From Cyanophora paradoxa CCMP329 (lineage: Eukaryota > Plantae > Glaucophyta), in assembly GCA_004431415.1 (NCBI GenBank), contig QPMI01000515.1, positions 62,001 through 126,000 of the forward strand: a stretch of DNA of 64,000 nt, in the 5' to 3' direction. This document shows, piece after piece, positions 24,127 through 55,965 of this stretch. The position numbers and the translations under genes were made by a program. Below the pieces are notes generated by a model, which saw nothing but the letters and a program-made list of their open reading frames with translations, had not been told where the DNA came from and ran no database searches. Numbering within the stretch: position 1 is the first letter of the stretch; each line of letters starts with the position of its first letter.

Positions 24127-24179
24127 CCCCCGGCGCGCCAAAACGCGGCCGGGCCACTAGTACAGGCTAATTTAAATTT

Positions 24180-26040: not shown

Positions 26041-26042
26041 CA

Positions 26043-29000: not shown

Positions 29001-32000
29001 TTGACGACACGGTCCGCGGCGTGTGCCCAGACGCCGTCGTCAAGCACGTGATCGCCCTGTGGTCGTGGAACGTCGTCGGGACGTCCGCGTCGCTCCGGCG
29101 CGCGCCAGTTCGCATCGCCGAGCGCTCGGTCCCCCACAAGGACTCGTGCATCGTCCAGAACGGGCACGTCGGCGAGGCCGGGGCGGGCATCGGCGCCCTG
29201 GAGGGCAAGTTCGTCGAGGGGCACGGACGGCCCTTCTCTTACTACGTCCTGGGCGACGGTTCGCGCGTGGCCATGGCCCGCAGGGGCGGCTGGGCCTCTT
29301 GCCTTTTCTGGCTGATTGATGCCGTGCGTTCGATGCTGCGCAGAGATCGTTCGGCTGAGGTGCTGCTTTCTTTAATTTGCAAATCTAAGAGAGCCTTTCT
29401 TTTCGCAAGTATTAATTGACTGACAGGCGCCCCGGCACCTTCGAGAGCGGAATCGGTGGGGAGGTGAGCGGGCGGCTGCGCTTGCAGCCGGAGGGCTGGG
29501 CCCCGAGCCTCGGCGAGTGGTACTCGGTCCGGGCCGCGGTCTACTCGCGGGGCTCCCTCTTCGTCGTCCGCCAGAGGCACACGGCGGAGGACACGGATTG
29601 CCAGCAGTACCTGCAGAGGGACATCGTCACGACCGGCTTCTCGAACCGGATGCGGAGCATTCTCAGGCCTTCCTTCGGGCCAGTCGAGCTTCTGAAGGTC
29701 CCTCCGCTATAGCTATTAGTGCTTTGAGCGTGGCCGGCAATGAGCTTGCACTGCTCCCAGATTGAGAACGTCGAAGGAGAAGTGATGGGGCCTGTCCGCG
29801 TCGCCATCAGGAATTTCTACAAGGAAATAACGTGCGCCAGCTTTTCGTCTGCAAATTTGCATCGCTTTCTGTTGCTTTTCCGGTTAACTGATGAGCCGCA
29901 TGGTGCGACCGCAGGGGCGGCTACGTAACCGACAACCTTGGGTGCGTCCCTAGGGGCCTGGAGCCTGCGGCCTCTGTCAACGACGTCTACCTCTGTCAAC
30001 GTTGACACGTTGCGCAGAGCGATGGACTCGTTCGATTACCGCTCGCCCTTTCCCGAGACCCCTTACATCGTTCTGTACAACAAGCAGCCGTGCGCGCGTG
30101 CCTTACGCTGTACATGTGGTCGCCGATCGCGAGTGCATCTCACGTCTCCTGCAGGGCACGCGTCATCAAGATCTACACAGACTGCCCCGCCGGGCAGGCC
30201 TTCAACGCCCCTTCAGTCTTCGGAGATTCGGTCGGCGACAACTGCGTGCCCCTTCCCCCAGGTAGCTGTCGATAGGGCACTTGGATTTTGCAGTCAAGCA
30301 GGCTCGTTTTCTTACGCGAGGCTCCGCGCGTGCAGGCCTCTACTCGAACAGAACGGGCGTGATCAGCGAGGACGAAGCGGACGTGTGTCCCACGGGCACC
30401 TTCTCCGAAGAGGGCGCGACGTCGTGCACAGGCCCGCCCGCCCGCCCGCCCTCTCGCGCTTTTCCCACTGCTATATATATCTTACGATTGGTGGTCGCGC
30501 AGCGTGCCCCGCTGGAACGTACAGCGAAAGGGGCGCCGGGTCGTGTTATGGTGCGCGTTCGCTCTTCGTCGTGTGCCGGTTGAGATCTGATCATTACGTG
30601 GTTCAAAATCGCAGAATGCCCCCAGAACACGTTTTCGCAGACGCCCGGCACTCCCTGCGCACCTTGCCCTGCGAACGCATTTACTCAGACCAAGAAGTGG
30701 ACCTCGGAATGCGCTGGTTTGTGATTTAAGTATACCATGTGTTCCGGAATTACATGACATGCTGGTGTTAACAACTGGCCGCGCAGTCTGCGAGCCGGGA
30801 ACGTACCTGCCGTACACGGGAGCGACGGTTTGCCTGGCGTGCCCGGCCCAGACGTGGGCCCCGAGAGGTTTGAGATTCTAACTCTGGCATACGTTCATTA
30901 TTCATTATAACGGTTTTCGATATCATGAACAGGAACCCTCGGATCATGCTTGTCCTGCGAGCAAGGAGCAGTGCCTTCGGCCGACGCGTCGCACTGCGAA
31001 AAATGGTGGGCCCCGCAAAAGTAAAACACTTCGAATCGCACTGACAAATTCGAAACAGCCCTGCTGGCACGTATCAGAAAGAGAACCGTACCGCGTGCAT
31101 TCTCTGCCCTGAGCTCACGTTCACATCGAGCGCGGGCACATTCGGACAGTGCACGCCCTGTAGTCCTGGTTCGCAGTGTCCTCGCGTCTTCCAACAGTCG
31201 GACAATGACGGCGCGCCGCCTCTCGCAATCGCAGGCACCGTGAGCGTAGACGCGCGGACCGAGTGCAGAGCGTGTCTGCCGGGCTACTTTTCTTATGGGG
31301 CGGAGTGCTTGCGCTGCTTCGGAAACAGCATCGCGCCCGAAGCGGGGCGGTCGAACTGCACGGAGTGCCCCCGCGGACAGGTGGCGACCGAAGATAAGCA
31401 AAACTGCATCGCGTGCCCTGGTCAGTATTACTATAACTAGCACTAAGTATATCGCTCTCCAAACCGTTGAGTTCAAAGAAGCGTATTCGTTGACTCGAGT
31501 GCTGCAGCCGGCACCTTCTTCACCGTGGCGGCGGGAAGCGACGTGGCGACGTGCGAGAAGTGCCCCATCAACACGATCACCAGCACCGCGGGGCTCGACG
31601 CATGCACGCCCTGCAAGCTCGGCGAGGTCGCCGCCGCCGACTCGCAGTCTTGCGTGCCCTGCGGCGCCGGTGCGGAACAGGCCGAGAAATGCGCCCTACT
31701 GCCGGCCAAACTTGACACGAGCTTTATTGCAGGCACGTACCGCGCGGAGAACATGTCAGCGTGCACTCCCGTGCCGCCGAGATCCGTCGCGCTGCAAGGC
31801 GCAGAAATCTACACCGAGTGCGCTCCCGGAGAAGTCCCGAGCAGGGCCAAGACCGAGTGCCTGCAGTGCCCTGGCGGTGCGATTTTCGTCAAGAAAGTCA
31901 CTCAAGTATCTTTATCCTTCGCTTAATCGCTCCGACTCGGCGACAGGGAGCTACCAGAAGAACGACACGTGCGAGAGGTGGGTCTTGCCTGCATCGCAGT

Positions 32001-35000
32001 CCGACAGTCTCCAGGACGCGCCTGACGCAGTATATAAACAGATGCCCGCTCAACACCGTCGCGAGCGCGCCGGGCCGGGCCGAGTGTACGCCCTGCCGGG
32101 AGGGCGAAGCGGCGTCGGCGGACAGCCAGACGTGCGAGCCGTGCCAGGCCGGCTTCTACCGGACGGCGGACATGGCGAGCTGCGCGGTCGTGCCCGAGCG
32201 CGCCGCCGCGCTGGAGCGCTCGCCGCTCTACGTGAACTGCAGCGCGGGATGGATCCCCAACCTGGCGCGCAGCGAGTGCACGCCCTGCCGCGCCGGCTAC
32301 TTCCAGAACCAGGACGTCTGCGAGCGGTACGTGGGTCCCTCACAATCGCCCGTCGTGAACGCGCGGCTCGGCATTGACACAGACGCCGACGTCGACGCAG
32401 TTGCCCCAAGCTAACCGTCTCGTCAAGCGAGGGCAGTGACCGATGCACGCCGTGTGCCGCTGGCTACGTGACGGTGCGCGATGTTTCTTTTCCGCCTTCC
32501 AGTGATAGCACAGAACGCTTTGGCGAGCAGGCGGAGGACCAGCAGTCGTGCATTCCTTGCGGAGTGGGTGCGCCACACTTTAATCTTTGTGGTTACTTTA
32601 AATTGTCGGAATCGCTGATTATATTTCCAGGCACGTACCGCACGTCCGACATGTCCGTCTGCACGGCGGTCCCGCACCGCGCCGTCGCCCTTTCTGGCTC
32701 ATCAAACTACACGGAGTGCTCGCCCGGCGCGGTCCCCGATAGCGCCAAGGCGCAGTGCGTGCAGTGCCCCGCAGGCTCCTACCAAGTCGGGGAGATGTGC
32801 GAGCGGTGAGATCACTTTACAAATTGAGCATACATTAAAGCTGCGGCTGCCTGAAACAGCGCCCAGTTGCCCGATCAACACCGTGTCGAGCCTCCCGGCC
32901 GCAACAAACTGCACGGAGTGCCTGCCTGGCGAGTTTTCAGCGACGGACTCACAGGTATTCCTCCTTCCTTTGTGTATGTACACTGATTTCCATTCCATTC
33001 ATAACACTTGCGCAGACATGCATCCCCTGCGCCGCGGGAACGTATCGCGCAGCAAACATGCCGGCGTGTCTGCCCGTTCCTCCACGAGCGGCTGCGCTGC
33101 CCGGCTCTCCGTTGTACACAAACTGCTCCGCGGGATTCGTGCCGAACGCAGCGCAAAGCGAATGCTACGCCTGCGCTGCTGGTGCGGCTACTGCTTCGGA
33201 TTTCGTGTATTTAATTTCCTTTGATTCTTTGATTTTCGAACAGGGTCCTACCAAGACGGAGACGTCTGCAAGCGCTGTCCAGATCTCACGATCGCAGCGT
33301 TCCCCAACAGCACCGTCTGCGCTCCGTGCCGCCCCGGCACGGTCCCCGCCGATGACCTTCAATCCTGCGTCCCCTGCGGGGCCGGAACGTACCGCGCGCC
33401 GGATATGCTCGTCTGCACGCCTGTCCCCTTCCGCGCTGTCGCTCTACACGGCTCTGCAAACTACACCAACTGCTCGGCGGGATGGATTCCCGACGCGGCG
33501 AAGGCGCAATGCTTTGAGTGTCCTGCTGGCTCGTTCCAGACTGGCGAGACTTGCGAACGGTCTGCTTTGGAGCTTCTATTCTACGTTTAAATTTCAATTG
33601 TTTCTTACTTCTCTCAACTTTGCAGATGCGCGTTGAATTCCGTGACCGGGTCGCCTGGCCAGACGAGCTGCCGCATCTGCGACTTGGGATATGTGTCTGC
33701 AAGCGATTCTCAGACGTGCCTCCCTTGCCCTGTAGGTGCGTGGATGTTGACGTCGGCGCCGGTAACTGTGCTGCCCAAATCCCGTCCGACGCTTCGGCAG
33801 GGACATACCGAGGCGCCGGCATGGACGCCTGCACGCCCGTGCCCGAACGCGCGGCCGCGCTCCAGGGGTCGTCGGCCTACACGGCTTGCGACCCGGGCAG
33901 CGTCCCGAACGCAGCGCTGAGCGAGTGCCTCGCGTGCCCCGCCGGTGCGCGTCAATGCCATGGCCACCGTACTCCGTACACCGCTCACGTTGTGGCATGC
34001 GCCCGCAGGCTCGTACCAGGTTGGGGACGTGTGCCTCCGGTGCCCGGAGCTCTCGGTGGCATCTTCGCCGGGCAGCACCTCCTGCCGCGCCTGCGACCTC
34101 GGCCAAGTGCCCGCCGACGACCTCCAGTCCTGCGCCGACTGCCCCGCCGGCACCTTCCGCGGCGCCAACGCGTCCGTCTGCGAGAACGTCCCCTGGCGCG
34201 CCGTCGCCCTGCCGGGCTCGGCGAACTACACGGCGTGCCGGCCCGGCGCGATCCCTGACACCGCGCTGGCCCAATGCGTGGACTGCCCCGGCGGGTCGTA
34301 CCAAGTCGGTGACGCCTGCGAGCGGTCCGTCGCCTATTCTGATATCGATTGCGTGCTCTGCCTGCAAATGATTCGAAAATTCTGATTTGATCGCAATTAT
34401 CCAGGTGTCCCGTGAATTCTGTCACGAGCTCGCCCGGCCTTGCAGCGTGCACACTCTGCCTGGAGGGATTCGTCTCTTCCAGCGACTCGCAGGCAAGCGC
34501 GCGCAGCACAGAACAGCACAGCTTTTCAAGCCACGCTGATGCGTTTTCGAATTCCGCGCAGCTGTGCCTCCCGTGCAGGTCGGGCACGTTCCGCGCCACA
34601 GGAAACACGACGTGCCTGCCTGTCCCTGTCGCCTGGCTCGATTCCCTGGCCTTGCGGTGACTTAGTGACTAGAGCTAGTTGGTGCCTGACGTAGTCTGAG
34701 AGCCCTGGCATAGTCTCTCTTCCTGTAGGCTTACCTCTCGGTAGCCTACGCTGGCCTGCCTCTACCTGTCTTAGGGGTACAGAGTCAGTAGTCTTCCGGG
34801 TACACAGTGAATACACCAGCCTGCATCTACAGCTTCTCCAGCACTGGGAGCCGGCCCCGCGCAGTACTGCGCGGGTGCCTAATCGGGTGGGAATACCTCC
34901 CATCCGACAGGCGCCACTGCTCACGGAACTGGGCCCGTGGGCAGCCTCCGACAGCATCAGCCCGTCATCTTCGGCGACCATCAGCGATGCGCACGCATCG

Positions 35001-38000
35001 CTAGTAGCTCTAGAAACATCGTTTCAGTGCCGATCGGCGACCCCCGCGCACCGGCGGGCCCGGATCGGCGTGCGATCGATACGCACACAGCGATCAGCCT
35101 CAGCGAGCCGCCAGGCTCTCCGTCAGCGCACCGGAAACGTAGAACTAGCTCTGGAGAACCGATAAATGCGGTCGGACGCGCCCTCCCGTCGCCCTCGCCG
35201 ACGGACGCCGCAGATCTTGTCCAGATCCCCGAGGGACAACCTCGACGCCCATGCCCGTACGCGCGCCCCGCCGCGCAGCGCCGCGCGTACGGCCTCGAGC
35301 AGATAAAAGAAGACCTTTACGACGACCGGCGACTGGCGAGCCTCGCCCTGGACCGAGGCGTGCATGAGTCTGGTCGATCGGCTGTGCTGGCTCTCGCTAG
35401 CCTTGCACTCCGAGCCCAGCGCTTCGCGCCGGAGTTCTTCACGGCCTGTGCTGGCGCAGCGCACGCGCACGGCCCTCGGGGTGCGCGCCTGGCCCTCGCC
35501 CTTGGGATTTGATCTGCTGGGGTCGGCAGATTTGATCCTGGCACTGGACGCGTACGGGCTCGGACCTCGCCTGCGCCGCGCGCGCCCCACAAAGCGCGGG
35601 CGGTCGCTGGCCAGCTATAGAGAGCCAGGCGAGCCGCTCGCCCGCAGATCCTTCAGCGGATCTGGAGGAGACGTGGGGGCAGCCGCGTGGCTTAGCCTGG
35701 CGCCCACGGCCGCGGGCTGAGGTTCTGGCTCAGCGCGGTTACGACGGCCAGAACTTAGTCCTGTGGAAGCCAGGCCCGCGCGCGAATACCCGAGGGTGCT
35801 ATTCCCGGTCGGATTCGTCGACGCCGCCTGCGCGAGCTGCCGTGCGAGCCCGAGGGTGCTATTCCCGGTCGGTCGCCAGTCACTCGCCGCGACGCCAGCC
35901 CTCTACGGCTGCTGCGATCGTGCTGGACAAGCTCGAGTGGACCGGATCGAGAACTGAGGCCGCGCGCCCGAGTTCCTTCCGGCGAGTGGACCGGATTGAG
36001 AACTGAGGCCGCGCGCCCGAGTTCCTTCCGGGCGAGAGGAAGAGCGATCGGATCGATGGCTGAGGCGTGCGCGCCCGAGCTGTCTCCAGAATCGCCGCAG
36101 CCGAGCTTGCTCGCCGCTGCTGTGGACCACGACGGCCTCGGATCTCGAGTGAGGCACATTATCTCATGGACTAGCGTGGCTTTACGCCGTCGCTTGACCT
36201 GAGAATGCCCTCAAGACCTGGAGCTCAAGGGCACCGACTGCAGAGCGGACCCACCTGCTGCCTTGCCTGCAGGCAGGGCCCTCTTGCCCCGCCATGGCCA
36301 AGATCTCGAGCTTGAGAGCATTGGCCTTCCCTCGGCTGATGCTTCTCTCGGCCTCAACTCTTGATCATGATCATGAGCGCCTGCACGCTGGCCATGGCCT
36401 CGGATCCGACGCAACGCCGCGGTGACGGTGATGCACTCGGCGCCAGCGGCACACACATCGAACGTCGACGCAAGGCTCAAGCTTGATCAATTATAAGCTG
36501 AAGGCCTAGCTATGAGACGCGGTCTCGAGCTCACTTCATGATCAAGAGCTTGAGCCGCGAAGCGATATCGATATCGATAGCGCGGCCCTCAGGGGCTCGA
36601 GCCGCTTTATCTTTCGCATTCCGCTGTGCACTAGCTATGCGCTAGCCGTCTGCCTCGAGCTCAAGCTTGCGGCAGCTGCAGCTAGCCGGTACCTGGCACA
36701 CCGTGACACCTTCTCTCGCGGAGCACCGCGGACGGTGCTAGCAAGAAGGGGGTGTGACGCCATGATCATGATATCGATGGCAAGCCGCGGCAGTACCGCA
36801 TGCGTATGCACGTGCACAGTACGCGAGCTGCTGATCATGATCATGCATCTGATCATGCATATGCAAGATCACGAGCTCGAGCTGTAAAATCGAATTCAAA
36901 CGCGCCTCGCAACGCCTCCCCCGCGAGCCGCTGAGCTCGCCAAGCTCGCCGCGTCTGCGGGGTTCGCGAAGCTTAAGGCCAAGGCCCCCGCCACGTGCAA
37001 GCAGGCGCGGCCGCAGGCCGCCCTGTGGCCAGAACGCTTTGCGCCGACGGTGCCTGGGCCAGCCCCGCCGCCTCAAGCTCCGAAGCAACGAGAGCCGGGC
37101 CCGGCCGGGCCCCCGCCGCTGAGGAGCGCGAAATTCCCTCTGACGAGGGATGCCCGACGACCCCGGCCGGGGACGCTCCGGGCAAGGCCGGCGACGAGTC
37201 GCCGCCTGGTGGGCCCGCCCCGCCGGACGCCTGTGACGCCAACGACTTTCCCCTCGCGCTTGCCGAGGAAGTCCCAAAGCGCTCAGAGACTGGACCTCGT
37301 CGGTGGGGCGCTCGAGGGTTCGCCGAGCCGCGGCCCCTGCACCCTGACGAGATCTTTCCCCGCGGCCCTGCCCTGAGGTGGCAGCCCTGGGACGAGTACA
37401 ACACGCGCCACTGGCGCTCGCCGGCCGATCCCGAGGACCGGCTGACTCCCGATCGATATCCGCATCGGGTGGAATTCGAAGCCGGAGTTCCGGGGTCTGC
37501 CGTGCCAGGCCAGCCCATGGCCGGCGCCATGCACATGGCACCGGACACTGAGTTCCACTAAGTAAGCTCTGGGTCGGGCGGCATCGGCCGCCTCGAACGC
37601 CCAGCGGCCAGCTGTAATTTGGGCCCACTTCCGGCTTCCGGCTCCAGCTGTAATTTGGGCCGCAGAGCTAAGCTCTAATGTCGGCCCCGGCTGATTGCAA
37701 CTGGCATCCGGCTCCAATCCGGCCGCTATCGCCGCTTTGGAATCCGCTAGTGCTGAACCGCATATCGAGCTACCAGCCGGCTTTGCGACCGGCGGCTAGA
37801 GCCCCTAGCCTCGAGCTCAGAGCTCGAGCTCAAGGGTGCGCGCCAGACGCTCGAGAGGGCCAGAGCTGATGCCCTGATGCCGGGCCCACGCACGACCGGC
37901 GAACCCCATCGCGATTGCGACTGCCTGCCTCGAAGCTGCCAGGCTGCTCGACTGCAGTCGCGATCGAGAGCCAGGCTGAGCGTTTAGGTTTCGCAGCAAG

Positions 38001-41000
38001 CTCCTTCGGGGCCTTGACTGCGAAATTGGAAATTTACCCCGCACGAGCTTCAAGCTCGGATCAGGGCCGCCAGGCCTCGCAACCGGCCCCTAGGCCTGTC
38101 CGACGGTCTTCCCGCAGCACTGCGTGCTGCATTCGGGAGCGCCGGTCGGCATCCTGAGGCCTTGATGCTCGAATTCGAGCCGCTACCCGACCAGGCCCGG
38201 AGCTAGAGGCCCGGCCTGCACTTCTGAGGCTCGTCGAGCCTCGGAGAGTGGCGCGTTTCACGCACAGCCGGCCCATGCGGCCCCCGAGCTCGAGGTTCAC
38301 CTGGCTACCTAGCATGGGCCCCATGGTCCTCGAGAGCTTGAGCTCGAGCCTAGCGCTAGCGCTAGCGCCGACGGCGATATCAACTGCGGATTCGAGCTCG
38401 AGAGGCGAGCTCCGGCCCGCGGCTCAAACCGTAATCACGCCGTCACGAGCCCCAGGCTCGAAAGGGACCCGAGTTGCTGAGGCTCTCTGCCTACAGCTGT
38501 CGCAAAAAGCGCAAGACGCCCCGCATGCGCAGTCGGGCCTGGCCCAAGATTGAGGGCGCCGCGCGGCGCACCTCTCACTGCGAGCCAGCACCTGGCCTGG
38601 CCATGGCCTGCTCGATGCAAGCTCTCAACTCCGGATCCCGAGGCTCTCCGATCCGGACTGGAAGCTGTCAGGCCGAGACCCGGATCTGCCGGGCCGGACC
38701 CCGAAGCTCACGCTTGCTTTTCGAGCGAGACGTCGACGCTCTGGGCCCCGGTTGACTAAGCCTCGGAGCAAGCCGCCACTGTGCCAGCTCAAACGCCCGG
38801 CGGCCCGCCCGGCCCGGCGCCTCGCGATCGAGCTCGAGCTCGCTTCCGAGCCCTGGATCCGGTTACGAGTCGATTTCGGCTCTCATGATCAGGACCTGCT
38901 GGCACTGCGAGTTCGGCTCCCGCCGTTAACGTTGCCGCTGCGTGCACGTGCCATGGGCCAGCGGGTACAGCTCGAGCTCAGCCGCGAGCTGAGGGCCGGA
39001 AGTCACGTGCACGAGCACGTGCACGTGCACTGTACCACGCGTACGGCTCAGAGCTGCCCAGCCTAGGCCCCGAGGCTCCACAGCCGCTGAGCCCTAGGCC
39101 TGCGAGCGACTGGCAGTGCCAAGGCCCGGTTTCAATTTATGAACTGAGTCTGGAGCTTCGCCAGGCACAAATTCGAAGCCGTTCCGGTCTCGGCCGCCGA
39201 CACCCGTCGGTCGCGGTCTCGGCCGCCGGGCCCCATCGAATTACGCTCAGCGACTCGCCCTCGCGGTTGCCCTCGCCTTCGCGGTCAAGGGTCGCGACCG
39301 CCGAGCTGCCGTTCGCATCGCCGAGCTGCCGTTCGAGCCGGCCGGGCCCCGGCCCCATGGTCAGAGGAGCGATTGCGAAGCTGCGCAGCACGCCCGGACC
39401 AAGGGCGCTTATCACAGCGCACGGATCGAGCCCATGGCTGATCTCGCGTGCTGCGACGTCGGGATCCTTCGAGTTCCCGCGCGCGCGTCCAATGCCGTGC
39501 CTCACGATCGATATCGGCCTGCGGCCCCCAGGCCTCGGCCCTGTATCTCGCGCCGCTACGAGCCTCCAGAGGCCTGAGAACAGCGTCTCTCGCGCCGCTG
39601 CGAGCAAGGAGCGCTGCAAAGCCGGGTCACAGCCCTACGCCGACCCGGGTGACCGATCGCAAAATCGCGGGCCTTGAAATCGAACTTTGAATTCCGAAGT
39701 TCCAACCCGGCCTCGGCCTCCGATCCGTGAACGTGGGATCGCCCTCGGCTCGAGATCGAAGCTGGTCACGTGTACGTACACGCTTACGACAGCGCCGTGC
39801 ACGCGGCACGGCGCCGGCCCGCTGTCGACGTCGACGTCGCGACCGCCTGCCTCGTGACCTCGAACTCGAGCCTCGGAGCCGTTGAGCCCGTTGAGTCTCG
39901 CCCTCTCTCAGAGGCGGAGGCACCCGGCCCGGCCCCAGGCATCATGGCATATTGGCTCTGCCCCCCCACCCGCACCGCGGCAGCTGGTGGGCGCAGATCG
40001 TGATCGCACGGCCATGCGAACGCCTGTAAACATTCAAGCCGATGCGTATACGGCCCCGTTAAATAACGGCCGCCCGGCCTCGCCCTCGGCCCGGGGCCCC
40101 GCAGTCCACGGCCGGCCGCGGCTTGCCGCTGGGCCCGGAGCCCTGGAAGTCCTCTGCAAATAGCTGCGGTCCCTGGCCTCGAATCCAGAGGACGAGCTCA
40201 GCCTACGATCGGCGCTTGCAATTGCCTGCGAACAGCTGGCGGCAGCGTCCCGGAGGCCCTGCCCTCAGCCTGGCAGGGCCCGCGGCCGAAGCTGACAGCG
40301 GCACCCGCGCCCCGCGCCGAAGCGTCCAATGCGCCTGGCGCCCCGATGCGCGGGCGCCTCGCGATCGCCGACATCGTGCCACGGTGGTCTCGTTGCCCAC
40401 CGTTGAACGGTTCAATTAAGCCAATTCCGAGCCCGACCAGTGAACGAGCCTCGGAGCTCGGGCACTGCGCTTCGAAGTCGTCTCGAGCCGCCTCTGGCCA
40501 AGGCGAGCTCGAGCTCACAATCAAAGTTACGCTAGCTCGCTCGGATTTAAACCCAGAGCCCGCCGCACGCGCTCCAGCCCGCCTGTGGCTGCCGTGCACG
40601 TGCCTGGCCATGCATATGGGGTCCAATGACCCGCGAGAATCCGATAATCGAGATCCGTCAATTTGCAATCGTTGCCCGATTCAGGGTGCCGGCCTGCGAA
40701 TTTGGATCGCAAGGAACGACTATCCGATGATCGCGAGCTTCGCGATCGGGTTTGGAGCAGCTGCGATCGCAGGCGGCCCTCGGCCCTTTTGAGGTCTGAG
40801 GTTGCCCGGGCTCGCAGCTCAGGCTCCCTTCTGCCAGATCTAGACCGCCCCCACCGCCGGGCTGGCACTGCGGAAGCCGTGCCCGTTCGATATCGCGAAA
40901 ATCCGATAATCGGGACCGGACTAAAGATTCGCGATCGAATATTCCGAGCCTCGGAGTGCCCGGCCAGCCCGAATCTGACGGACGGCCCGTCACATTCGAG

Positions 41001-44000
41001 CCCGCGCAATTGCGAGGCCTGAGATCGGAGTAGTCGCAATTTCAGGCCGCCCTCAGCCCTCGCCTGGCATGTCCCCTCGCGAGCCTCTCGCCCCAGGGCC
41101 TCCTCGTAAGCGCCTGTGGCGACCCGCATCGGAATTCCAGCCCCACCGGGCCGCACCGGCCTGCCCTGCGAAAACCGGCACGGCCACGAGCCCAGCGAAA
41201 TTCGCGGCGAGCCTAGGCCCCGCGAATATCCGCGTCGCGAATCCACGATCACGCTCGATCGCTGGACGTCGCAAAGCTGTGAATTAGGGCCTCGCCCCTA
41301 CGAGAACGCGGATTGTGGCCCCCGGCCCAAACGCGAATCGATATCGAAGCTCGCAACGGGCTCGACTCGTCCTCCCGAGTCCCAGGGAGACCGAGGCCAA
41401 TTGCGAGCGTCAAGCTAGCGACTGGAATCGAATGTCGGGCTCCCACGCGTGGGCCAGCGCTACAACGTACAGCGGGCCCCAGAGCCGCTTGTCGAGCCGT
41501 GCACGACTCTTTGCACGTGCAATCGCGTGGCCGCGGACGCGGACACCGATCGCGAGCGCCACAAATATTCAAGCCGCAGCCACCATGGCCAGCGGGAATA
41601 AAGGCTGCAACCGTTAAACAAAACTAAACGGCTAGCCCTACCTTGCATAAACCGCGTGCACGTGCACGTGTGTGTTGCAGGCGCGGGTCTCAGCCCCGGC
41701 CAGGCCCACAGCATATGCATCGATATCGCGACCGGATATCGGATGCAGCCGCTGAGCAGCCGCGCTGAGCGCCGCGAAAAATTCGAAGCCTGAGCACTTA
41801 TGCGGTAGCTTTCTCAAAAAGGCTGCGCACACGGCCCCGTGGCCCCGGACCGACTCGCGAAACGACGACGACTCGCGATCGCGAACGGACGATCGGCTGC
41901 GCTGAACAGCGCCCGGCTCTCTCTGCCAACGCCGGCACGCCGCTCGGCGAGCGCTGATGAGGCGCTGTAATGGAGCGCCGTGCTACAGAGCGCCGATCCA
42001 GCCATCGAATGTACGGTCGCGATTTGCAGCGGCATACATCCGTGCGAGCACTCCGAGAACGGCGCTGGCGATGCCAGCCCGCCAAGGGCAGCGCTAGCTC
42101 GAAAAGAGCATTGCCGCCGCCCTGAGCCGGAACCTGTGCACCACTTCGCCAAACCCAGCGATGCTGCAGCTGGTGCTGGCTGCAGGCATTTTTCGCACCG
42201 TAGCGCAGCCTTCAGGGCTCGCAGCCCGGCCCGCGAAATTTACACGCAACCGCACGGCGGCAGGCCCAGGCCTCGAGCTCGGCACGGCCGCTCGCCGCCA
42301 AGCCTGCGCACGCGGCCTTCAGCCCAACCCGCCTTGCGGCACGTTCATGCCTCGACCTTCCGCTAAAATGCGGTGGGAGAGAGAATGAGGCAGGGAAGAC
42401 TGCATGAGCTGCAGAAATCGTAATTCGCTACCGAGCAAAGCGAACCTGTCGACCGCACTGCGGCACCCAAATTCGAAAGCATCGCAATTCGAATTCGGAA
42501 TTCAATGATTCGGGACCGTGGGCGCGGCGCCGGATCCGATGATCCCCAGCCCGTTCTCGATCGGCGCGGCAGTGAGCCCTAGTGGCTGGCCCGTGCACAA
42601 GCCACGCGTACGGTATCCAATTTTCGGAAAGCCGTTCCCACCTAGCTGGTGGAATCTGCCGGCTTCACACTCCGGAACACCCGCCACGGCCAACGAGAGA
42701 CAGCGAGCAAAAGCCGCTGAGCTTCATCGTCTGCTCTCTCAAAAGCCGCCACGGCCCACTGCGAGACAGCGAGCGAGAGCTCTATCGTCAGTTCTCTCGA
42801 GAGCACCGGGGCCCGGCCCCCGGTCCGCTAAGGGAACGCTTGCGATCGTGCATGATATCGTCGGCACGATATTGACGCTCGTATGCACGAGCACGGCTCC
42901 TGCAACCGGCCGCTACCGGTCCCGCTCCTGCAGCTGGGAACCAATCGCGTCGGTTGCACGCCGCGGCGCCCACCTGCCGATCCCTGTGGTGCTGCTACAC
43001 TACGTACGGCGGCTGGCGCCCAGCCATCAATACCACGGCATGCGCAGCCGCGCCCTGCACACGCACTTGTGCCCGGCGGCCGCAGTGCACGCCCGTGGCC
43101 GGCTGCTGCGGTGGCGAGGCCGTCACGGCGCACGCCAGCGGACGTGAGGGCGCCCGCGTGCACAATCTTCGCGCCGGACGTTTCCCGGGCCCTCTAGATC
43201 TGTGCATGCGAATCACTTCGCGACGCCACGAAAAGTTTGCAGCACCAGAGTGCGGCAATTTAATTTCGCGCCCACGTGTGCGTGGCCATGCCAAGTGGCC
43301 CGGCCATTGCACGGCCCTTCGGCCAAGCATATGCATCATCCTCAGCCTCAGACCAGCCGCTGAGCCTGGTTCTGACGCTTACTAAAGCGGTCACGGCTCT
43401 CGCGACTCACCCGAGTCCGACGGTTGACCTCGATCTCGCGATTCCGCCCCGACGCCGCGCGCGGCTCGGAACCGAGATGTAGGCTACGCGTACGCGGCCC
43501 GCTCGAGAAGGCCAGACCGTCGGACCGCGCACGCACGGCCGATTTCGTACCTCTCGGCTCGCGAAATTTCGCGAGGGCCCAGCATGGCGAAAGTCGTCGA
43601 TTTTCTCTGGCGACCCGCCGGCCGGGCTCTCGTCCCGAGCAGCGGCGCGGATTTTCTCAAATTCTGCCCCGCAACCCGGACCATCGGACGTTTGCACGTA
43701 CCAAGTCACGCGGGCCCGGCTGCATGCAGCTGGCGCTCCTGCGAGCGAACGAGTTCGACATAGCTGTCAAATTCGTTTCGCGCTGGGCGGTGGCGACCCG
43801 GGATCTTATTCCCGGCAGTGGCGCACCCACCGTCACCAGCTTCATTCACTGAGGCCGCTCCCATAAATCTGGGTGCTGGCATGGCGCCCCGGCGCCTGGC
43901 CTAAAAACCGCGAAAAGCGGCAACACGGGCCAACAGACACGAGCATACACAGCCGAGCGCTATATATGCAAAATCGTGTTTCGGAAGCTCGGCCCAGGCC

Positions 44001-47000
44001 TTGAGCTGATCGACGACCGCTCGAGACTCGAAGCTCCGAGGCTCGATGCCCTCGTGCTCGACACGACTGGCGTCCGATCGAATCGCGAAATTCGAACGGC
44101 GAGCACTGCAGTGCGATTGACTCGCGACCGGCACAATCGTGGCCGGCCGACGCAATTGCTCAGTTGCCCACAACTCAATTCAAATCGAAGCCAGCATCCA
44201 TTCAACCTCGCTCTGGCCCCGCGGCTCACGCTTGCCCCTCGAGCTCGATTGAGCCCGAATCGAGAGCAAAGCGGCCCGGGACGCCATGGAATACAACGAA
44301 AGAAAGACGGATACGGTCGTGTACGATCAAGCCTCTCCGTTCTTTCCACCCACACTCGCGAATTTCTTCACCACGGCCATGCTGTCCCGATCCAATCACG
44401 GATCCCCGGGCCCAGCGGCCTCAGCGTGCCCAAATTTTCGCGGAAGACGCGTACGGTGGAGCACCGGGGACGGTGCTTAACCGAAGAGGAGTGGCATCGG
44501 AGGCAGTTTGCCGTGCTACGGCTTCCGCTCTTCAGCGGAAGAGGAGTACGCGCACAAGCGCTCGAGCCGAAGGCTGCCTCTTGGCCCGACGCCTGAGCCC
44601 CTCCTCGATCGGCGTATGCCTGCCACGCCCCGACTTCCCCTCTTCAGCGGAAGAGGAGTCGGGATCATGATCAGACTCGAGCATGCAGTCGACGTCGCGC
44701 CTAGACCTGCTGTGGAGCAGTACGCCCCAGCGCGCGCTGCCGTCTGCAGGCTGATCGAGCACAAGCGAGCGAACCTAGCCAACCGCCTTGAGGTCTCCTC
44801 ACGCGGCGGCTCGCCGGGATCCAGGTCTCGCCGTTGGCGAACCACATTCCGCCTCGGAAACCCATCGGTGGCGATGCTACTGGGGCTGATGGCCCTCAGG
44901 CCCTGTTGTTACGTGCACAGCCAGTGACCGTGTCCGGAACGGACCGGCAAGTGCTGTTTCGACAGAGCTTGAGAGCCCAGCTACGGCCAGTGCACTCGCT
45001 CGCACTACTCACCGATGCGGCCTCCTAAGGATCGGAATCGGATCTCAGCAGCCGACTGCACGCCGTGTCGCGGTCCGGCTACGCACAGAACACGAATTCG
45101 GATCCCCGATCAAGAGATCTGAGTCTCTGAAGGATTCGCCGTTCGTCAGCTTCGCCTGATCGCCTGGTATTGGGATGCGATCGAAACGAGCCCACGGCGA
45201 AGGCTGGCGAATCGGTCGCAAATCCGAGGGTCTCGGCACCGCGAACATGCAGTCTCGCGGATCGCTGCAGAACCCCTTCCCGTGATCATGACCCGCCAAG
45301 CTCGCCAACGAGCCTGGCTGCGGCCGGATCCCAGGAAGACCAGGCCGAGGGAACGACTGATGGGATTCGCGGCCAGCACGCGCGCCTTCGATTGACGGCC
45401 GCGTCTAGCTGGAGCGTCGACGTCGACACCTGGCTTCATCGCCAGCAGCTGAGCGCTGCGATGTCACGCACGTCGCGAACGCGAGGGCTCGGTCTCGGGT
45501 CCTCGCCCCATCTCTCGCCCCAGGCCACACACAGCGCCAGTACCAGCGTACACTGATGTACGTCCGCCAAGGGACCCGGACCTCCTCCAGGGAATCCCGC
45601 GCCGCGGCTCTACGTACACGCGTACACTGCAGCCCTCATGATCACGCCGTAGCGCGTGCTTGACGGCCTGGCGTATGCTTCACGAGCTCCAACCTTGCAT
45701 GCTCCCACCGACAGTCGCGAAGGGCTGCTCGCCCGCGATCAGCTGAGGCGTTGAGCTCGGCAACTCGCCCGTCGGCCTCGTGATCCAACCACGAGGGTGC
45801 AGCTGCTGAGCTGTGCACCCTGTGGTCCCAGCGATCAGAACCGGGAGCCGCGCGGATTGGACCCTGCACTGCAAGCTGCGCGACCTCGACAGGAGCGCCA
45901 ACGCAGTCACGGGATCGTCGAAGCATTTCTACTCTTCGATGATGTGCGGCTCAAGGGCTCGTACCTTTATCGCGTGCACCTGGTCGCGAGCTCGAGCTCG
46001 AGACGCACGTGCAAGTGCATACAAGGTCGCCGCTCACATCGACGTCGACTGCACGCTTCATAAATCCACATCAGCTGCGCCAACGCCGTCTGAGCTCGGA
46101 TTCAAATATTCCGCTCGACGCAGCTGCACGCTGCAGCTGGCTGTGGATCGGAAGCCTGCATGTGCAGTCGCAAATCCCGTCTTCTTGACGTGCGAAACGG
46201 ACCTCCTACGAGCCTCAGCAGACCCTACTCCCAACCAAACGTCCCGAACCAAATCTATACCTTGCCCCATACGTCGGCGCCGAGGGTTCCTGTGTGGGAC
46301 GCCGAGGGCGACGCTAGAGATGAGAAGAGACGGACGCAGGGCAGATTTCTTTGCCAGCTTTGCCTCAACCCTGACTTGCGAGGTGGGACGCGATTCGGTT
46401 GGGGACCGTTCGCGGGCGCCATCTGGGTCTTTCGTTCACTTTTCTGGGACATGGGCCCGGCGCTCGTGGAGAGTGTCCAGGTGTTGGCCTGCTGGGCGCG
46501 TGCGAGTCTCTTGGGGGGACTGGGCGCTTGCGAGTAGGGGCACCTGGACGTGCCCTGTCCTTTCGTTGGGCTTGATGGGTGGCCCGAATACCTCCTCGCT
46601 GGTTTCTTCCCGAGGCGGTGAAACTTCCCATCCGTGCCACTCTCCAGCGGCCCTCGCCGTTTGGAGTGAGTTTGGGCCAGCGTTTACACCTTTCGAGTTT
46701 TTATGCTTTTCCCTTTCGAGCTTTCCCGCATGCACGCATTTGCCTCACCTGCCATGCCTTGCATACGACCTGGACGGGATCGATCTACAGCTACCTGGCC
46801 TTCTACCTGGCCTGCAGCTGTCTGCGTTCCTGTCCCCGGGCCGTGGCTCAGGTTCCTCGTCTTGGGGCCTGTCGGTACCCTCGAGCGGTGCACCCATCGG
46901 CGGTGTTGGGGACGCCCTCTTGCGGTTATACCGACTGGAGTCACGGTTTGACTGGCTACGTCGCGCGGACGCGACGTCAGCGGAAGAGGAGTTGTCGCCT

Positions 47001-50000
47001 GGCTCGATTCCCTGGCCTTGCGGTGACTTAGTGACTAGAGCTAGTTGGTGCCTGACGTAGTCTGAGAGCCCTGGCATAGTCTCTCTTCCTGTAGGCTTAC
47101 CTCTCGGTAGCCTACGCTGGCCTGCCTCTACCTGTCTTAGGGGTACAGAGTCAGTAGTCTTCCGGGTACACAGTGAATACACCAGCCTGCATCTACAGCT
47201 TCTCCAGCACTGGGAGCCGGCCCCGCGCAGTACTGCGCGGGTGCCTAATCGGGTGGGAATACCTCCCATCCGACAGTCCCTGCCCGCTCTGTCGCGCCCC
47301 CGGGCTCCTCGTGGTGCGACTCTGTTCATTTCGATTCTTCTCATTTTTGCGCACCCACGCTTACGCACGTCGCCGTCAAGGTACGTGGAGTGCGCCCCTG
47401 GCTGGGTCCCCGACAACGCGCTGAGCTACTGCGAGCCCTGCGTCGCCGGTGCTTAAGCTTGCAGCCGCTCTGCTAACTCTCGCTCCTTTATTTCCAGCGC
47501 CTCTGACTTTCTTTCAGGGACGTACCAGGTGAACGACACTTGCGAGCTCTGCCCCGTCAACACCATCACGAGCGCCGCCGGCCTCGACGCCTGCTCCGAG
47601 TGCCCCCCCGGAACCGTCTCCGCTGCGGACAGCCAGAGCTGCATCCGTGCGCCCCGGCCCTCGCTCGACCTCTGCCGTAGTTTCGGTCTATGTCTTACGC
47701 TGCGCAGCGTGCCCGAGCGGCACGTTCCGCAACGGGAGCATGCTCGCCTGCGCCGTCGTTCCGACGGGCTCCATCGCTCTGCAGTCCTCGTGGTTCTTCA
47801 CCGTCTGCCCCCGCGGCACCGTCTCGAACTCGCCGGGCGACGAGTGCGTCCCGTGCGGCAAGGGCCGCTTCGAGGTGGACAGGGTCTGCCGCCCGTGCGC
47901 CGGCAACACGCACAACCCGAACGCGACGGCAACCGAGTGCATCGAGTGGTGCGATTCGTAATTTTAGAACCGCGTATAAAGCTGTCCCGCGAGCCCACTG
48001 CTCGCGACGGAAAAGCCCCGCTGATAGCGATTGCGTTTTCCGTGCGCGTGCAGCGCTCCGGGCACGGTCACGAGCGCCGACCGCCAGACGTGCCAGGCCT
48101 GCCTCCCCGGCCAGTATCGGTCCGAGGGAATGGTCGAGTGCGCGGCCTGCCCGTGGGGTGCGTGCGATTCCTATTGCTTGCTCAAGCTCGAGATTTCGTG
48201 CTTTTGTTTGCTCGGTCCGACTTCAGACGCGCGTGCAGGGACGTACAGCATCGGCGGGGCCCCCGCCTGCACTCAGTGCCCGCCCGGGACCGTCAGCAGC
48301 GAGGACCGCACTTCGTGCGACGCCTGCGAGCCCGGCTTCTACGAGCGGAACAGGTTCGCTCGAATTCCTAATATATATATAATGAAAAAATGCTTCATGC
48401 TCAATATCTAGATCTTGTTTGAAAATGCGTTTGCAGGACGTGCTTGGAATGCCCTACCAACTTTGTCACGCCGCAACCTGGGGCCACGTCCTGCCAGCCG
48501 TGCGAGCCAGGATACATTTCCTCTCTGGACCGGCAGAACTGCCTCGTGCGCCAAGGCTGCGCTTTGATCTCTTTAACAAAAACAAATCAAAATTAAATCG
48601 CCCTGCAGCCTTGCCTGCAAGGGACGTATCGCTCGGCAGAGAACTTCAGCTGCCAGGCGTGCCCCTTCCGCCACTACACGTCCTCGTCCGGCAATTTCAA
48701 CTGCACGCTGTGGTGAGTTCGTGTTAAGATCAATTATATAAGTATGAGCGTTGTAATGGAACTTTGACGAATCTGGATCGTAGCCCGCCTGGGACGGAGA
48801 GCACGGACGACCGCACCGAGTGCAGGTTCGTGTGGTTTTGCACTGCCATCTTTCGCATCTCTCGCGTAGTTGTACACCCTTCGCTGACGAAGGCCTATCC
48901 GCGCAGGCCCTGCTCGCGCGGGTTTTACGAGAGAGACGGACTTTGCTGGCAGTGCCCAGATGTGCGGCTTCTGGTTTATATTATTTATTTTTCATGATCA
49001 TCTCCTTCCGATGTCGATTGCAATACAGGGATCAATCGCGCCTGTCCCTGAGATGACGGCGTGTGATCGATGCGAGAACGGTCCGCAACCGGTACCGCGT
49101 CGACATTCGCACGTTCGCTTGCGCCCAAACCTTTCCCGCAGGAACGATTTCCAACGAGGATAACACCGTCTGCCGTACATGCCGTGGCGGAACGTACCAC
49201 GCTCCTGATCAGGCAAGCTATTCATGATGCCTCTGCAGCTGCCCTTCTGATCTTTGATCGGGTCATGTTTTATGTTCTTAGAACGTGTGCCTGCCATGTC
49301 GCATCGTGCGTTCCTCTGCGAGCGTTGCAGCTGCCGGGGCCGACTGGCATGGCGTTGCGCAGGGGCTCTGGGCTCCTCCCAAAACATACGGCGAGTGTCT
49401 GGAGTGCCCCCAGGGGTACTACGCCTCTCCGGACAGCACGTACTGCATTCCATGCGAACCGGGCCAGTTCATGCGCAACGGCAGCGCCGTCTGCGAGGCG
49501 GTGCGCGGCTCACTTCGGTTATCCAACGGTTCGCGTTCATCCGCTTAGTTTGAGGCCGTGCGGGGCCGGGCGCAGTGTCCTGCGAACACATTCACGGATG
49601 TGCCCGGACAGACCTCCTGCAAGGCCTGCCTGCCGGTACGGCCGCGCGCTGCTGCTTCGCTCTCTTTGGATGTGTCCGACGCATGGCTGCCCCGCCCGCT
49701 TAGGGCTTTGTATCGGCTCCGGACGGACGCTCGTGCATGCCCTGCCGGCCGGTGCGCACCGGTTTCATCAGTGGGACCGCTCGTCGCCAAACTCTAGATC
49801 TGAGCTGGGTCGCGCAGGGCTTGTTCCGGAGCGCCAACATGTCGGCCTGTGAAGCCTGTCCACCGGTGAGGCCTACGCATCTCACATCTCATTCAATGTC
49901 TTCCGCCGTCTTTCGCTTAATAACAGTCTCCTGTATATGCGTCCGGACGATATCCCATGATAATAATCGTCCCACTCGCGCAGGCAACCATCGCCCCATC

Positions 50001-53000
50001 TTTCGGATCGAGCGAATGCCTACCCTGGTGCGCATGTTTGGTGTTCGTGTCGGAATGTGCAGGCGGTCTGAATACTCACGTGCCTGTCGCAGCCGCTCCG
50101 ACCAAGTTCCTCGCGAGGACCGGTGCGCTGTCGGCCCCGGGCTTTATATATATTTTGGTCCCTGCGCTTTCTGATCTGACATGTGTTCAACAGGGCCGAG
50201 TGCATTGGCGCGCCCCGCCCTCAGACCCTGCGGCTCATGATCAACGCTCAGCTAATCGGACGTCGCAGCGTGTCTGCCTGGCTACGTACCGTTGAACAGC
50301 GTAGAGTGCCGGATGTGCGGGCCGCTCGAAATCGCCCCTTCCGCGGGTTTGAGCACGTGCCAGGCGAGCCAGCCAGCGACTGCAATAGCCGACTCCCTGA
50401 AACGAAAGCCTCTTTTAATTTGGCCTTGAACCCTGCTTTTGCAGGCGTGCCCGGCCGGCCACGTCGCGGACGCGAACCGCGTTGCGTGCCTCCCCTGCGA
50501 TGCAGGCGCGTCCGCTCTGTCTCCTCCGTTCCCGTCTGCACACGTGAACTGAAAGTGCGCGTGTACAGGGACGCACATCCCTGCAAACGGCACGGCGTGC
50601 GCGAAGTGCCCGCCAAACACGATCAGCGAGGCCGGCGCAGCCGCCTGCACCGCGTGCCCCGCAGGAGAAATCTCCGAGAGCCGCCTCTCCTGCTCGCAAT
50701 GCGTGCCAGGTTCGTTGCCGTGTCGCGCCGCGTTTAATATCGTCTCGTCTGGCTCGTCTGACGCGTACAAAAGGAACGTTCCGAAACGCGTCGATGTTGA
50801 ATTGCGAGGCTTGGTAACCGTCTCTCTGATTCCCTTTCTTATATTTCCGATCGTGATCATGACTGCCGGCGGGGCCAGCCCCACCGGCACCTACGCCAAG
50901 GACGCCGCGAGCGCGGGCTGCCTCCAGTGCCCCCCCAACAAGCTCTGCCCCATCGGTGCCAGCGCCGGCGCGGCGCCGACCGACGCGCTCGCTGCGTCGT
51001 CTTTAAGCTTTGCCGCTCACTGTGTGTGGGTGCGCGCGCGCAGCGACCGTCGATTCGGTCGACCTCGGCCTGCTCACGGACCTTGAGTTTGACTCGGGAT
51101 CGGCCGCCGGCGACGGCGCTGGGGCGGGGACGGGAACAGCGGTCGGCATCGCCCGACGGCTCCTCGAAGCCATCCCCATCGGCCGCGGCCGGAGGCTGCC
51201 GCTGCAGGCCGCGCGCACGAAACCGGCCTCGAGAGTCAAGGCGGCCATTCCGTTCGCGGGCGATTCGCTGGCCCCTCAGCAGCAGGTGGACGAGGTCGTT
51301 CTGGGCCAGAACACGGCCACGGTCAGTGAACGCTAGCGCTGCCCCGGCCCGGAATTCCAGTGCCGGCGCCGCTGTACAGCCGTTTAATACATGAAAAACG
51401 CCGCGCGACGCAGGTGACGCAACCGAGCGTGAAGACGGAAGAGCCGGTGCCCTCTTCTGTTATGTGATTCGCTCTTTTCTCCTTTACGTGTGTTGAAGGC
51501 GAGTGTGCGTGCACGCAGGTTTTATCGGCGCTCAACAGGCTCTTCCTCATCATCCTCGCCTGCGTCTTCGGCTTCGGCGGCCTCGTCGGCCTCGCCATCT
51601 ACGCGTACCTGCGCCTGATTCCCGTGAAATCGCCCGAGGAGCGAGCCGAGCGCTACCGCCTCCTGCAGCGGCTGCACTTCCTCTACCGCGGTGCGTGCGT
51701 GCGCGCGCGGCAGCGCCGCCCTTGCGATTCCTTTTTGAGCGCCGCGCGCCCCAAGCCGACGCTGACGCCGACGCCGACGCCGCTGCGCTGCAGACGAGTT
51801 CGAAGAGCACAAGGAGGAGCTGGAGAAGGAGAAGGAAAGGCTGCGGAAACTAAAAGCCGCGGGCCGCGTGGGCAAGGCGTCTGTCGAGGAGGAGGAAAAG
51901 GAGGGCGCAGCGAAGCCGCCAGAGGACTTGCACGGCCGTACGGTCTCGGGCGCCTTCTTCTCGGTGCTCCCGTCTCATCGGATGGGCTCGCGATCGCGAT
52001 TTCTCTGACGCGCTATTTCTTCTGCGCTGTTCATCAGATCCTGGGAGTTCTTTTCGTGCTGGCCGCCGTTAGTTTCGTTGTGGTCCAATGGGGGGTCGCG
52101 AACTATGTCGTGCGCTTCGCTTTTCCGTCTAATTTCCATCTTCTTCGTGGTTTTCCGTCCGCGTTTCCGTCTGATTTCCGCCTTTTCCGCGGCTGCAGGT
52201 CGTGCAATCGCTCAACCCTGGGACGAGCCCCTCGGCGAACCTGATCCGCGGAAATTTCAGCTTTTCCGCCACGTTCCGGTTCGGCGCCGCCAGGCCAAGT
52301 TGGCGTGCAGAGCTTGCGGTGCGCTGATCGCTCCGATGCAGGGGCTACACGGGCCCGTGCGCTGCGTCGGATGCCGGCTACGCCTCGGCCGGACTGGAGG
52401 GCGCGCAGAGCCTGTCGGTCGCGTCGTACCTGCCCACGACCTGCACGTGCGTGTTCGGGGCCGCGTACGATGTCGATGGCGCGCGTGTTGACGGCGGTGG
52501 CGCCGGTGGTGCCGCGCGCGCGCAGGCTCAACTGGACGTGCAGCGACTGCCGCGTCGCGTCGATGGACGATGCTTACGCGCGGCTGCGCCTCGCCTCGCG
52601 GCCAGCCTACGCAATTGCCGTGAACTACACAGCGACGGTTGGCGTTCGCATCAATTCTAGATCTGACGATTAAAATCAGCCTTGCGAGCGCTGATTCCTG
52701 TACCCGCCAGCTCCCGGAGCAGGTGGTGGTGAGGGGCATGATGCAGCCGTCGTCGAACAGCTCCGTGTTCCGCGGGGCGACGCCCGTCGAGCTGCCCCTC
52801 GACCTCGTGCGTGCGATCCGCACGCGCCGCGCCGCGCCGCGCCGCCGTGCGAACGCGCCGTCGACGTCGAATTTCCGAATTTCCGGCAGACGGCGATGCA
52901 CTTCACGTCTCCTCTCGACGGGAAAGCGCGCTACTACACAACGGTCGCGTCCTCCGACACGCAGGTGCCGCCCGCTTCATTTTCGTTTTCGCCCCAGCCC

Positions 53001-54692: not shown

Positions 54693-55211
54693 TGGGCTCG
54701 CCTGTACTTCACAGGCCGGCCGACGACTTACAGTATTTATCATTTTCCTTAAAAAGTGCACTTTCGGGGTTTTCTTTCGTTACGTATACGTATTTGTCGG
54801 TACAGAGGTATGCGAATGCACAGTATACGTAGCTATAGGCTTAACTAAGCTTAAGAGAGCACAAGAATCGGATCTAGGCCTAGGCGTCATCTAGCTATAT
54901 AGATATAGATAAATGCAGCAAGAGCTCGAGCTGCTCTGAGCATCGATATCATTAGAACTTTGCAGTTCAATGATTCCATTATTGTATGGTTGTGAAGCTT
55001 TTGCACGTTCTTCGCGTGTCGTACGCCACACTAGGAAAACAACGTTTCGTGCGCAAATCACGCTATAGCTATAGCTAGGAAAAAGATTGAAAGCATTAAA
55101 ATATTCGAAATCGAATTTCCGAGTCACGATAAGGCAACTTGCTCAGGGCGGAAAGGAAGAAAGAGCCGCGAGAGGGTCTGGCAAAGGTCGCCGCAGCACT
55201 ATAGCTAGTGG

Positions 55212-55965
55212 GCGCGTCTCCCGCGGCCGCGGCGGGCGCAGGGGCGCGGGGGGGTCGCAGGGGCGGCCGCCGCAGCGCGCGCCCTGCGCCGCCGCCGCCG
55301 CCGCCGCGTCTCCCGCAGCCGCGGCGAGCGGGCGGGCGGGAGGAGGGACGTGGGAGGGCGAAGGGGCGGCCGCCGCAGCACGCGCCCTGCGCCGCCGCCG
55401 CCGCCACGTCTCCCGCAGCCGCGGCAGGCGGTGCGGGCGGGGGAGGGAGATGGGAGGGCTTAAGGGCGGCTGCCGCGACGCACGCCCCGCGCCGCCGCCG
55501 CTGCCGCGTCTCCCGCGGCCGCTGCGGGCGGGGCGGGCGGGGGATGGACGTGGGAGGGCCCAGGGGCGGCCGCCGCAGCGCGCGCCCTGCGCCGCCGCCG
55601 CCGCCGCCGCGTCTCCCGCGGTCGCGGCGGGCGGGGCGGGCGGGGGAAGGGACGTGGGAGGGCGCAGGGGCGTGCCGCCGCAGCACGCGCCCTGCGCCTT
55701 CCGCCGCCGCCGCGTCTCCCGTGGCCGCGGCGGGCGGGGCGGGCGGGGGAGGGACGTGGGAAGGCGCGCGGCAGCCGCCGCAGCAAGCGCCCTGCGCCGC
55801 CGCCGCCGCCGCGTCTCCCGCGGCCGCGGCGGGCGGGGCGGGCGGGGGATGGACGTGGGAGGGCGCAGGGGCGGCCGCCGCAGAAGCGCCCTGCGCCGCC
55901 GCCGCCGCCGCGTCTCCCGCGGCCGCGGCGGGCGGGGCGGGCGGGGGAATGGACGTGGGAGGGCG
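55212..55965. repeat. GC-rich ~100-bp minisatellite, about 8 copies
   Basis: (G)CGTCTCCCG anchors recur at ~55214, 55306, 55407, 55507, 55609, 55711, 55811 and 55910, with (GCC)n and G-run segments between them. Confidence 0.9.

Follow-up and report, generated by a model that had tools for sequence, protein, structure and literature searches.

A 64,000-nt stretch of the genome of the glaucophyte Cyanophora paradoxa CCMP329 (contig QPMI01000515.1), referred to here as the window, was analysed, and all positions are given in its own numbering. A giant Cys-rich repeat gene, which encodes a surface protein, occupies roughly 2.3-53.5 kb on the + strand. One of its coding exons is split by a 12,649-nt element (34627-47275), which lies in the sense orientation and consists of two long terminal repeats (LTRs) and a 12.08-kb interior. 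This element is, in all likelihood, a full-length copy of a family of non-autonomous LTR retrotransposons of the large retrotransposon derivative (LARD) type of C. paradoxa, and the copy was inserted recently.

The boundaries of the element were determined by a repeat search of 33000-49000, which was confirmed by blastn. The only family of direct repeats in this region was a pair of 100% identical sequences at 34627-34910 and 46993-47276. The 284th base shared by these sequences is due to the chance identity of the first base of the primer-binding site (PBS) and the first base of the target site duplication (TSD); the LTR proper is 283 nt long (5' LTR, 34627-34909; 3' LTR, 46993-47275; both +), and its sequence, TGTCG...CGACA, has the TG..CA ends. 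The element is flanked by the 5-bp TSD GTCCC at 34622-34626 and 47276-47280 (both +), the left copy being the last 5 nt of the 5' half of the host exon. Thus, the identical LTRs and the perfect TSD described in the initial annotation, which had been made from the sequence alone, were both confirmed. A sequence search detected exactly two LTR matches in the window, and comparison of the element with the window by blastn revealed no other copy and no solo LTR.

A PBS-like site, GGCGCCACTGCTCACGG (34910-34926, +), starts with GGCGCC directly 3' of the 5' LTR, and a polypurine tract (PPT), GCGGAAGAGGAGT (46980-46992, +), abuts the 3' LTR, where it reads GGAAGAGGAG. In the interior, the PPT motif GAAGAGGAGT is also present in three copies within 44484-44659 (+), which end at 44493, 44547 and 44659. 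Between the PBS-like site and the PPT lies an internal domain of approximately 12 kb (34927-46979, +), which contains 2.2 units of a 49-bp tandem repeat at 35934-36040 (+).

As read from the sequence, GGCGCCACTGCTCACGG implies a primer with the 3' end ...CGTG-AGCAGTGGC-G-CC(A). In the window, ARAGORN detected no tRNA genes, and no Rfam match reached the gathering score. With the usual 7/5 register, the T-stem deduced from this end would presumably begin with G and not with the conserved C61. The 9/4 register of acceptor and T-stem known from selenocysteine tRNA is probably the only one that would keep C61. Priming by selenocysteine tRNA, if true, would be an unusual primer choice.

The insertion site in the host exon

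To study the 5' part of the locus with independent data, Logan contigs from three DNA runs (X1, X13 and X7) and one probable RNA run (X15) were aligned to 34300-40299. These read-based data cover the 5' junction and the adjoining 5.4 kb of the interior (34.9-40.3 kb). A contig of X15 was found to be spliced at two introns, 34325-34404 (GT..AG) and 34493-34561 (GC..AG; joint 34492|34562). The same contig then runs from 34562 through the TSD and 28 nt into the LTR. The donor of the first of these introns is GTCCGT; the second intron is 69 nt long, and its limits are supported by the RNA joint after resolution of a 5-nt ambiguity. In all three DNA runs, the flank contigs also enter the LTR for 28 nt with 0 mismatches. 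No empty allele was visible in these three runs, in which the contigs were unbranched at 34629, the expected point of divergence.

The 5' half of the split exon (34562-34626, +) was delimited by the spliced RNA contig and by alignment of its peptide with paralogous modules of the host gene. After the 3' half (47281-47313, +), the donor GTGCGA begins at 47314, and 47380 is the first position of the next exon. When the two halves were joined in silico to give the empty site, they were translated to CLPCRSGTFRATGNTTCLPVP|ARSVAPPGSS. This peptide aligned across the insertion point with the paralogous module at 33019-33108 (57% identity, E 4e-10), and the modules at 33366-33458, 34131-34223, 33797-33874 and 31729-31803 also aligned across the site. 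The exon at 47380 starts in phase 2, which gives ...PPGSSW-YVECAPGW, as in the paralogues. In the interrupted gene, the host frame continues with ten LTR-encoded residues (VAWLDSLALR) and then reaches a stop codon. Insertion into an intron, with the TSD serving as a splice donor, was also considered; this variant was rejected on the grounds that the phase of the reading frame did not fit and that the paralogous modules were contiguous across the site. The downstream part of the host gene includes a module with two transmembrane segments (51.5-53.5 kb).

These data bear on the explanation that two separate LTRs or elements were joined by misassembly or ectopic exchange. Identical LTRs are prone to collapse in assemblies, and the junction covered by reads is the 5' one only. 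However, the two TSDs match, and the flanks combine into a single exon whose alignment with paralogous modules spans the junction, whereas a recombinant of two elements would carry unrelated flanks; moreover, short-read contigs of all three DNA runs and a contig of the RNA run contain the 5' junction. Since the two flanks belong together, such an artefact is extremely improbable.

Coding capacity of the interior and copies of the family

To check whether the interior encodes proteins, the element was cut at stop codons, and the pieces were scanned against Pfam at E<=0.1. Every + strand piece of at least 100 aa was included, together with four pieces of 90-99 aa, and the - strand was represented by its 20 longest pieces. 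No reverse transcriptase (RT), RNase H, integrase, chromodomain, gag or protease family was detected in the scanned interior pieces; the Pfam search for pol domains suggested by the initial annotation therefore gave no match to RVT, RNase H, rve or Chromo at this threshold. The only matches were three sub-threshold ones at chance level: At4g08330 (E 0.064), UBA (E 0.05) and CATASP (E 0.068). Searches with regular expressions for the Zn knuckle, HHCC, YxDD and chromodomain patterns found none, and the single protease-like LDSGS, on the minus strand, corresponded to the chance level.

The longest open reading frames (ORFs) of the interior are 150-415 aa on both strands, as expected because its G+C content is 65%. 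The statement that there is no long intact ORF held up: the longest one (415 aa, 45813-47057) extends into the 3' LTR, and no relatives were found in a homologous-protein search either for this ORF or for a 309-aa piece on the minus strand (36741-37667). Traces of a gypsy-like order of domains had also been reported. The peptide PVNIQADAY, which had been read as RNase H-like, is indeed present, but the 101-aa piece that contains it had no RNase H match in Pfam. For the integrase-, GPY/F- and chromodomain-like traces, nothing was found by Pfam, by motif search or by phmmer; in particular, a phmmer search with 40067-40789 against 1.84 billion representative proteins returned no match.

Compositional features agreed with these results. 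The G+C content by codon phase was flat across the interior, whereas it reached 0.75-0.90 in one phase of the host exons. The median of the period-3 spectral signal was 1.08 for the interior and 0.85 for shuffled sequences versus 2.25 and 3.46 for two stretches of the host gene. The + strand translations were rich in R, A, P, G and S (13 of the longer pieces were checked), the leader piece after the PBS had no methionine, and no ATG-started ORF was found after the leader. The presence of recognisable gypsy or chromovirus remains is thus not supported in any frame.

An autonomous element with unrecognisably divergent or intron-split proteins could give a similar picture, since mobile elements of glaucophytes are poorly sampled in profile libraries, and one 351-nt window at 36900 does have a period-3 signal of 6.8. 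However, G+C simple sequence (GCCGGGCCC repeats) overlaps this window, and no relatives were found for its ORFs. Few folds are as well conserved as those of RT and integrase, which Pfam detects in all known LTR elements; moreover, no ATG-started frame follows the leader, and 1-nt indels are frequent among the copies described below. Autonomy of this element is therefore very unlikely.

The initial annotation had suggested searching for other copies with the same interior, and the interior was indeed found to be multi-copy in the three DNA runs over 34.9-40.3 kb. The word depth of the single-copy flank was 54.7, 40.7 and 8.6 in X1, X13 and X7, respectively, while the interior contigs with 0-1 differences had depths of 250-620, 144-357 and 17-54. 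This corresponds roughly to 5-11 copies per exact variant over this region, and the summed depth is higher. The variant copies span 85 to 100% identity. In X1, 100 contigs were at least 99% identical to the element, 95 were 95-99% identical and 57 were lower, which indicates that both young and older copies exist.

The copies differ in ways that are of importance for their coding capacity. Frameshifting 1-nt indels, for example +G at 37146 and at 38027, occur between copies at high depth. The number of 49-bp units also differs between copies, and every DNA run contained the joint 35929->36035 at this repeat with high depth. In addition, a derivative with a 3.9-kb deletion (joint 36383->40266) was present at single-copy depth. 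These indels, changes in unit number and deletion are incompatible with a conserved ORF. Because the interior is common to many copies (over 34.9-40.3 kb), copying apparently involves the entire unit, and because this multi-copy interior carries frameshifting indels, it points to a non-autonomous family of the LARD type and not to one decayed gypsy element.

The high depth could alternatively arise if the two LTRs enclosed not one family unit but a patchwork of nested repeats that are unrelated to each other. The summed depth varies approximately 6-fold along 34.9-40.3 kb, and the contigs are short, so the continuity of the segments in other copies lacks direct demonstration. Nevertheless, the exact-match contigs hold a similar 5-11x depth throughout the stretch, and the joint 36383->40266 connects distant parts of the interior. 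In the interior, the repeat search and blastn revealed neither nested pairs of LTRs nor terminal inverted repeats of at least 20 nt. A patchwork is accordingly unlikely.

Transcription was evaluated with the one RNA run. Its contigs cover the LTR and the leader (up to 35549, where the sequence comes from a diverged copy) and include almost nothing beyond. Contigs of X15 also join the start of the LTR to at least two other upstream sequences (loose ends at 34625-34677) and the end of the LTR to another downstream sequence. These joints indicate that other copies or solo LTRs are located in transcribed loci.

LARDs are defined as elements of more than 4 kb that have lost the coding region and kept the cis signals (PMC4350172). 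The element studied here has LTRs with TG..CA ends, a TSD and an interior of more than 4 kb with no coding capacity, which over 34.9-40.3 kb is shared by multiple copies. According to the proposed mechanism, a transcript that extends between the 5' and 3' LTRs would be packaged, and its reverse transcription would be primed by a tRNA at the site beside the 5' LTR and by the PPT beside the 3' LTR. An autonomous element would provide Gag, RT and integrase in trans, and integration would then yield the 5-bp duplication.

Several points weigh against this assignment. The evidence from reads is limited to 34300-40299, which includes the 5' junction, and that for multiple copies to 34.9-40.3 kb; the contig k-mer depth is a rough proxy for copy number; and all of the runs possibly represent one culture lineage. 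The 28-letter entry of the flank contigs into the LTR is shorter than the bridging threshold of 31 letters. Full-length RNA of the element was not seen in the one RNA run, which had no contigs over 35700-39700. Finally, no autonomous partner was found in a search confined to the 64-kb window and metagenome contigs; an exact scan of the JGI metagenome contigs for the LTR end together with the PBS gave 0 matches.

Micro-palindromes in the element and in host DNA

The initial annotation described the interior as packed with short palindromes. Such palindromes were found, for example, GAGCTCGAGCTC at 37820 and 40505, CACGTGCACGTG at 41659, GATATCGATATC within 36563-36579 and GTCGACGTCGAC at 39824 and 45416. 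Palindromes of 6 to 12 nt were approximately 2- to 6-fold more frequent in the interior than expected from dinucleotide shuffles (6-mers, 530 versus 283+-14; 12-mers, 36 versus 6.1+-2.4). This part of the description was correct; their being special to the element was not confirmed, since the flanks are enriched too. The left flank (22000-34626) contained 506 palindromic 6-mers versus 264 expected and 25 palindromic 12-mers versus 5.1 expected. For the whole range of 6-12-mers, the excess was alike in the left flank, smaller in the right flank and hardly present in the exon-rich array at 2.3-20 kb.

The sharpest signature was the 9-mer X.rc(X).X, in which a sequence X of 3 nt is followed by its reverse complement and by X again. 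In the interior, 108 such 9-mers were observed versus 8.9+-2.7 expected. The respective values were 95 versus 7.0 for the left flank (22000-34626), 72 versus 11.7 for the right flank (47276-59000) and 36 versus 2.3 for 59-64 kb. Across five stretches the excess over dinucleotide shuffles was 4- to 16-fold, the lowest value being that of the 2.3-20 kb array. In the same stretches, no enrichment was found when X was 4 or 5 nt long. The density of events was 8.0 per kb in the interior versus 6.8 per kb in the left host DNA. The micro-palindromes are therefore a genome-wide signature and not a trait of this element, and the comparable density of events suggests that the interior has long been non-coding.

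Comparison of the copies showed that this process leaves differences between them. Three of the four 6-nt indels between this copy and others are exact insertions of rc(X).X: GAT>GATATCGAT at 36770, CAC>CACGTGCAC at 36807 and GCA>GCATGCGCA at 38522. Hence, the palindrome process was active during diversification of the family. It looks like a specific mutational process, either hairpin or snap-back repair or the scar left on excision of an element that duplicates 3 bp of its target. No paper on such a process in Cyanophora was found in the literature.

These data also made it possible to evaluate the origin proposed in the initial annotation, namely that palindromic insertions destroyed the coding region of a Ty3/gypsy chromovirus and expanded it to 12 kb. 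With such an origin, pol remnants should still be recognisable in the gypsy order. The enrichment of micro-palindromes in the interior is real, copies do differ by 6-nt rc(X).X insertions, and all LARDs presumably derive from some autonomous element. A 5-bp TSD, which fits gypsy or copia integrases, is also compatible with this origin. However, the 97 perfect X.rc(X).X events of the interior amount to 582 nt, or 4.8% of its length, which falls far short of what the growth of a 5-kb element to 12 kb would require, and X.rc(X).X is about as dense in the left host DNA and is also enriched to the right. Residual codon periodicity is lacking, and none of the protein families listed above was detected by Pfam, with nothing found by motif search or phmmer. 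Expansion by palindromic insertions thus does not account for the size of the interior, and a destroyed and stretched chromovirus is improbable. Of the earlier proposal, the young, non-autonomous, LARD-like nature of the element with its cis signals (LTRs, PPT and PBS-like site) kept and its coding region lost was retained, while the gypsy/chromovirus origin was not, as there was no pol signal.

With regard to the history of the LARD-type interior, it is quite possible, as a tentative explanation, that it represents an old, purely non-coding lineage that carries the full load of X -> X.rc(X).X micro-insertions of the genome, and not a recently dead gypsy element. As part of the favoured LARD-type explanation itself, the micro-palindromes mark a genome-wide process by which a trinucleotide X in non-coding DNA acquires an adjacent rc(X).X, and the interior lineage has accumulated them in the way that other non-coding DNA has.

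Related elements and genomic context

Barley LARDs have LTRs of approximately 4.5 kb and interiors of approximately 3.5 kb; the Cyanophora element differs in its 283-nt LTRs, its 12-kb interior and its glaucophyte host. It resembles the LARDs of Triticeae in having LTRs, a PPT and a TSD, with a PBS-like site in the place of their PBS, around a non-coding interior of more than 4 kb that is conserved and multi-copy (here, over 34.9-40.3 kb). Triticeae LARDs are presumed to be mobilised in trans, and the same is presumed for the Cyanophora element, for which, in contrast to them, a partner was not identified. In rice, the non-autonomous element Dasheng shares its LTR, PBS and PPT with the autonomous gypsy partner RIRE2. 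Dasheng is similar to the Cyanophora element in its large non-coding interior, recent copy burst and near-identical LTRs, and it differs in that its partner is known and shares its termini.

The LARD class was defined in barley and other Triticeae, as summarised in PMC4350172 (Kalendar et al. 2004, cited therein). Two other non-autonomous groups described in that paper, which like the Cyanophora element retain cis signals only, are terminal-repeat retrotransposons in miniature (TRIM), which are shorter than 2 kb, unlike the 12,649-nt element, and terminal-repeat retrotransposons with a GAG domain (TR-GAG), which are shorter than 4 kb and have a gag ORF, unlike the Cyanophora element with no gag family or Zn knuckle (PMC4350172). 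LARDs listed for Ectocarpus and Tisochrysis lutea indicate that the class also occurs outside land plants. These, however, are pipeline classifications from a stramenopile and a haptophyte, with no sequence relation to the Cyanophora family. The LARD type is thus an established class, to which a glaucophyte family is now added.

Two other features were observed downstream of the host gene. An ORF piece on the minus strand (60137-61093) had no Pfam family and one protein match, EukProt tig00020944_g16356.t1 of C. paradoxa, with exon blocks that were 100% identical; the piece reads open through the intron of this gene model (residues ~176-255 of the piece). At 55087-56232, approximately 1.1 kb has a G+C content of 80-88%, which is equal in all three codon phases. 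Its translations resemble repeated simple sequence (PRPPRPRETRRRRRR-like) and are open in several frames.

In the C. paradoxa genome, LTR elements account for 1.77% and unknown repeats for 11.5% (PMC6704402). Elements like the one described here probably make up part of the unknown-repeat fraction, and the present data add a characterised non-autonomous LTR family to this genome. They also show that recent retrotransposition in C. paradoxa was strong enough for a coding exon to be interrupted in the sequenced strain, which bears on the gene model of the surface protein and on studies of this protein. The micro-palindromes are not a pathology of the element, and the copies of the transposable element can be used to study this genome-wide signature. 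If the interior is indeed an old non-coding lineage, the family would provide a clock for the rate and mechanism of the palindrome-writing process in Cyanophora.

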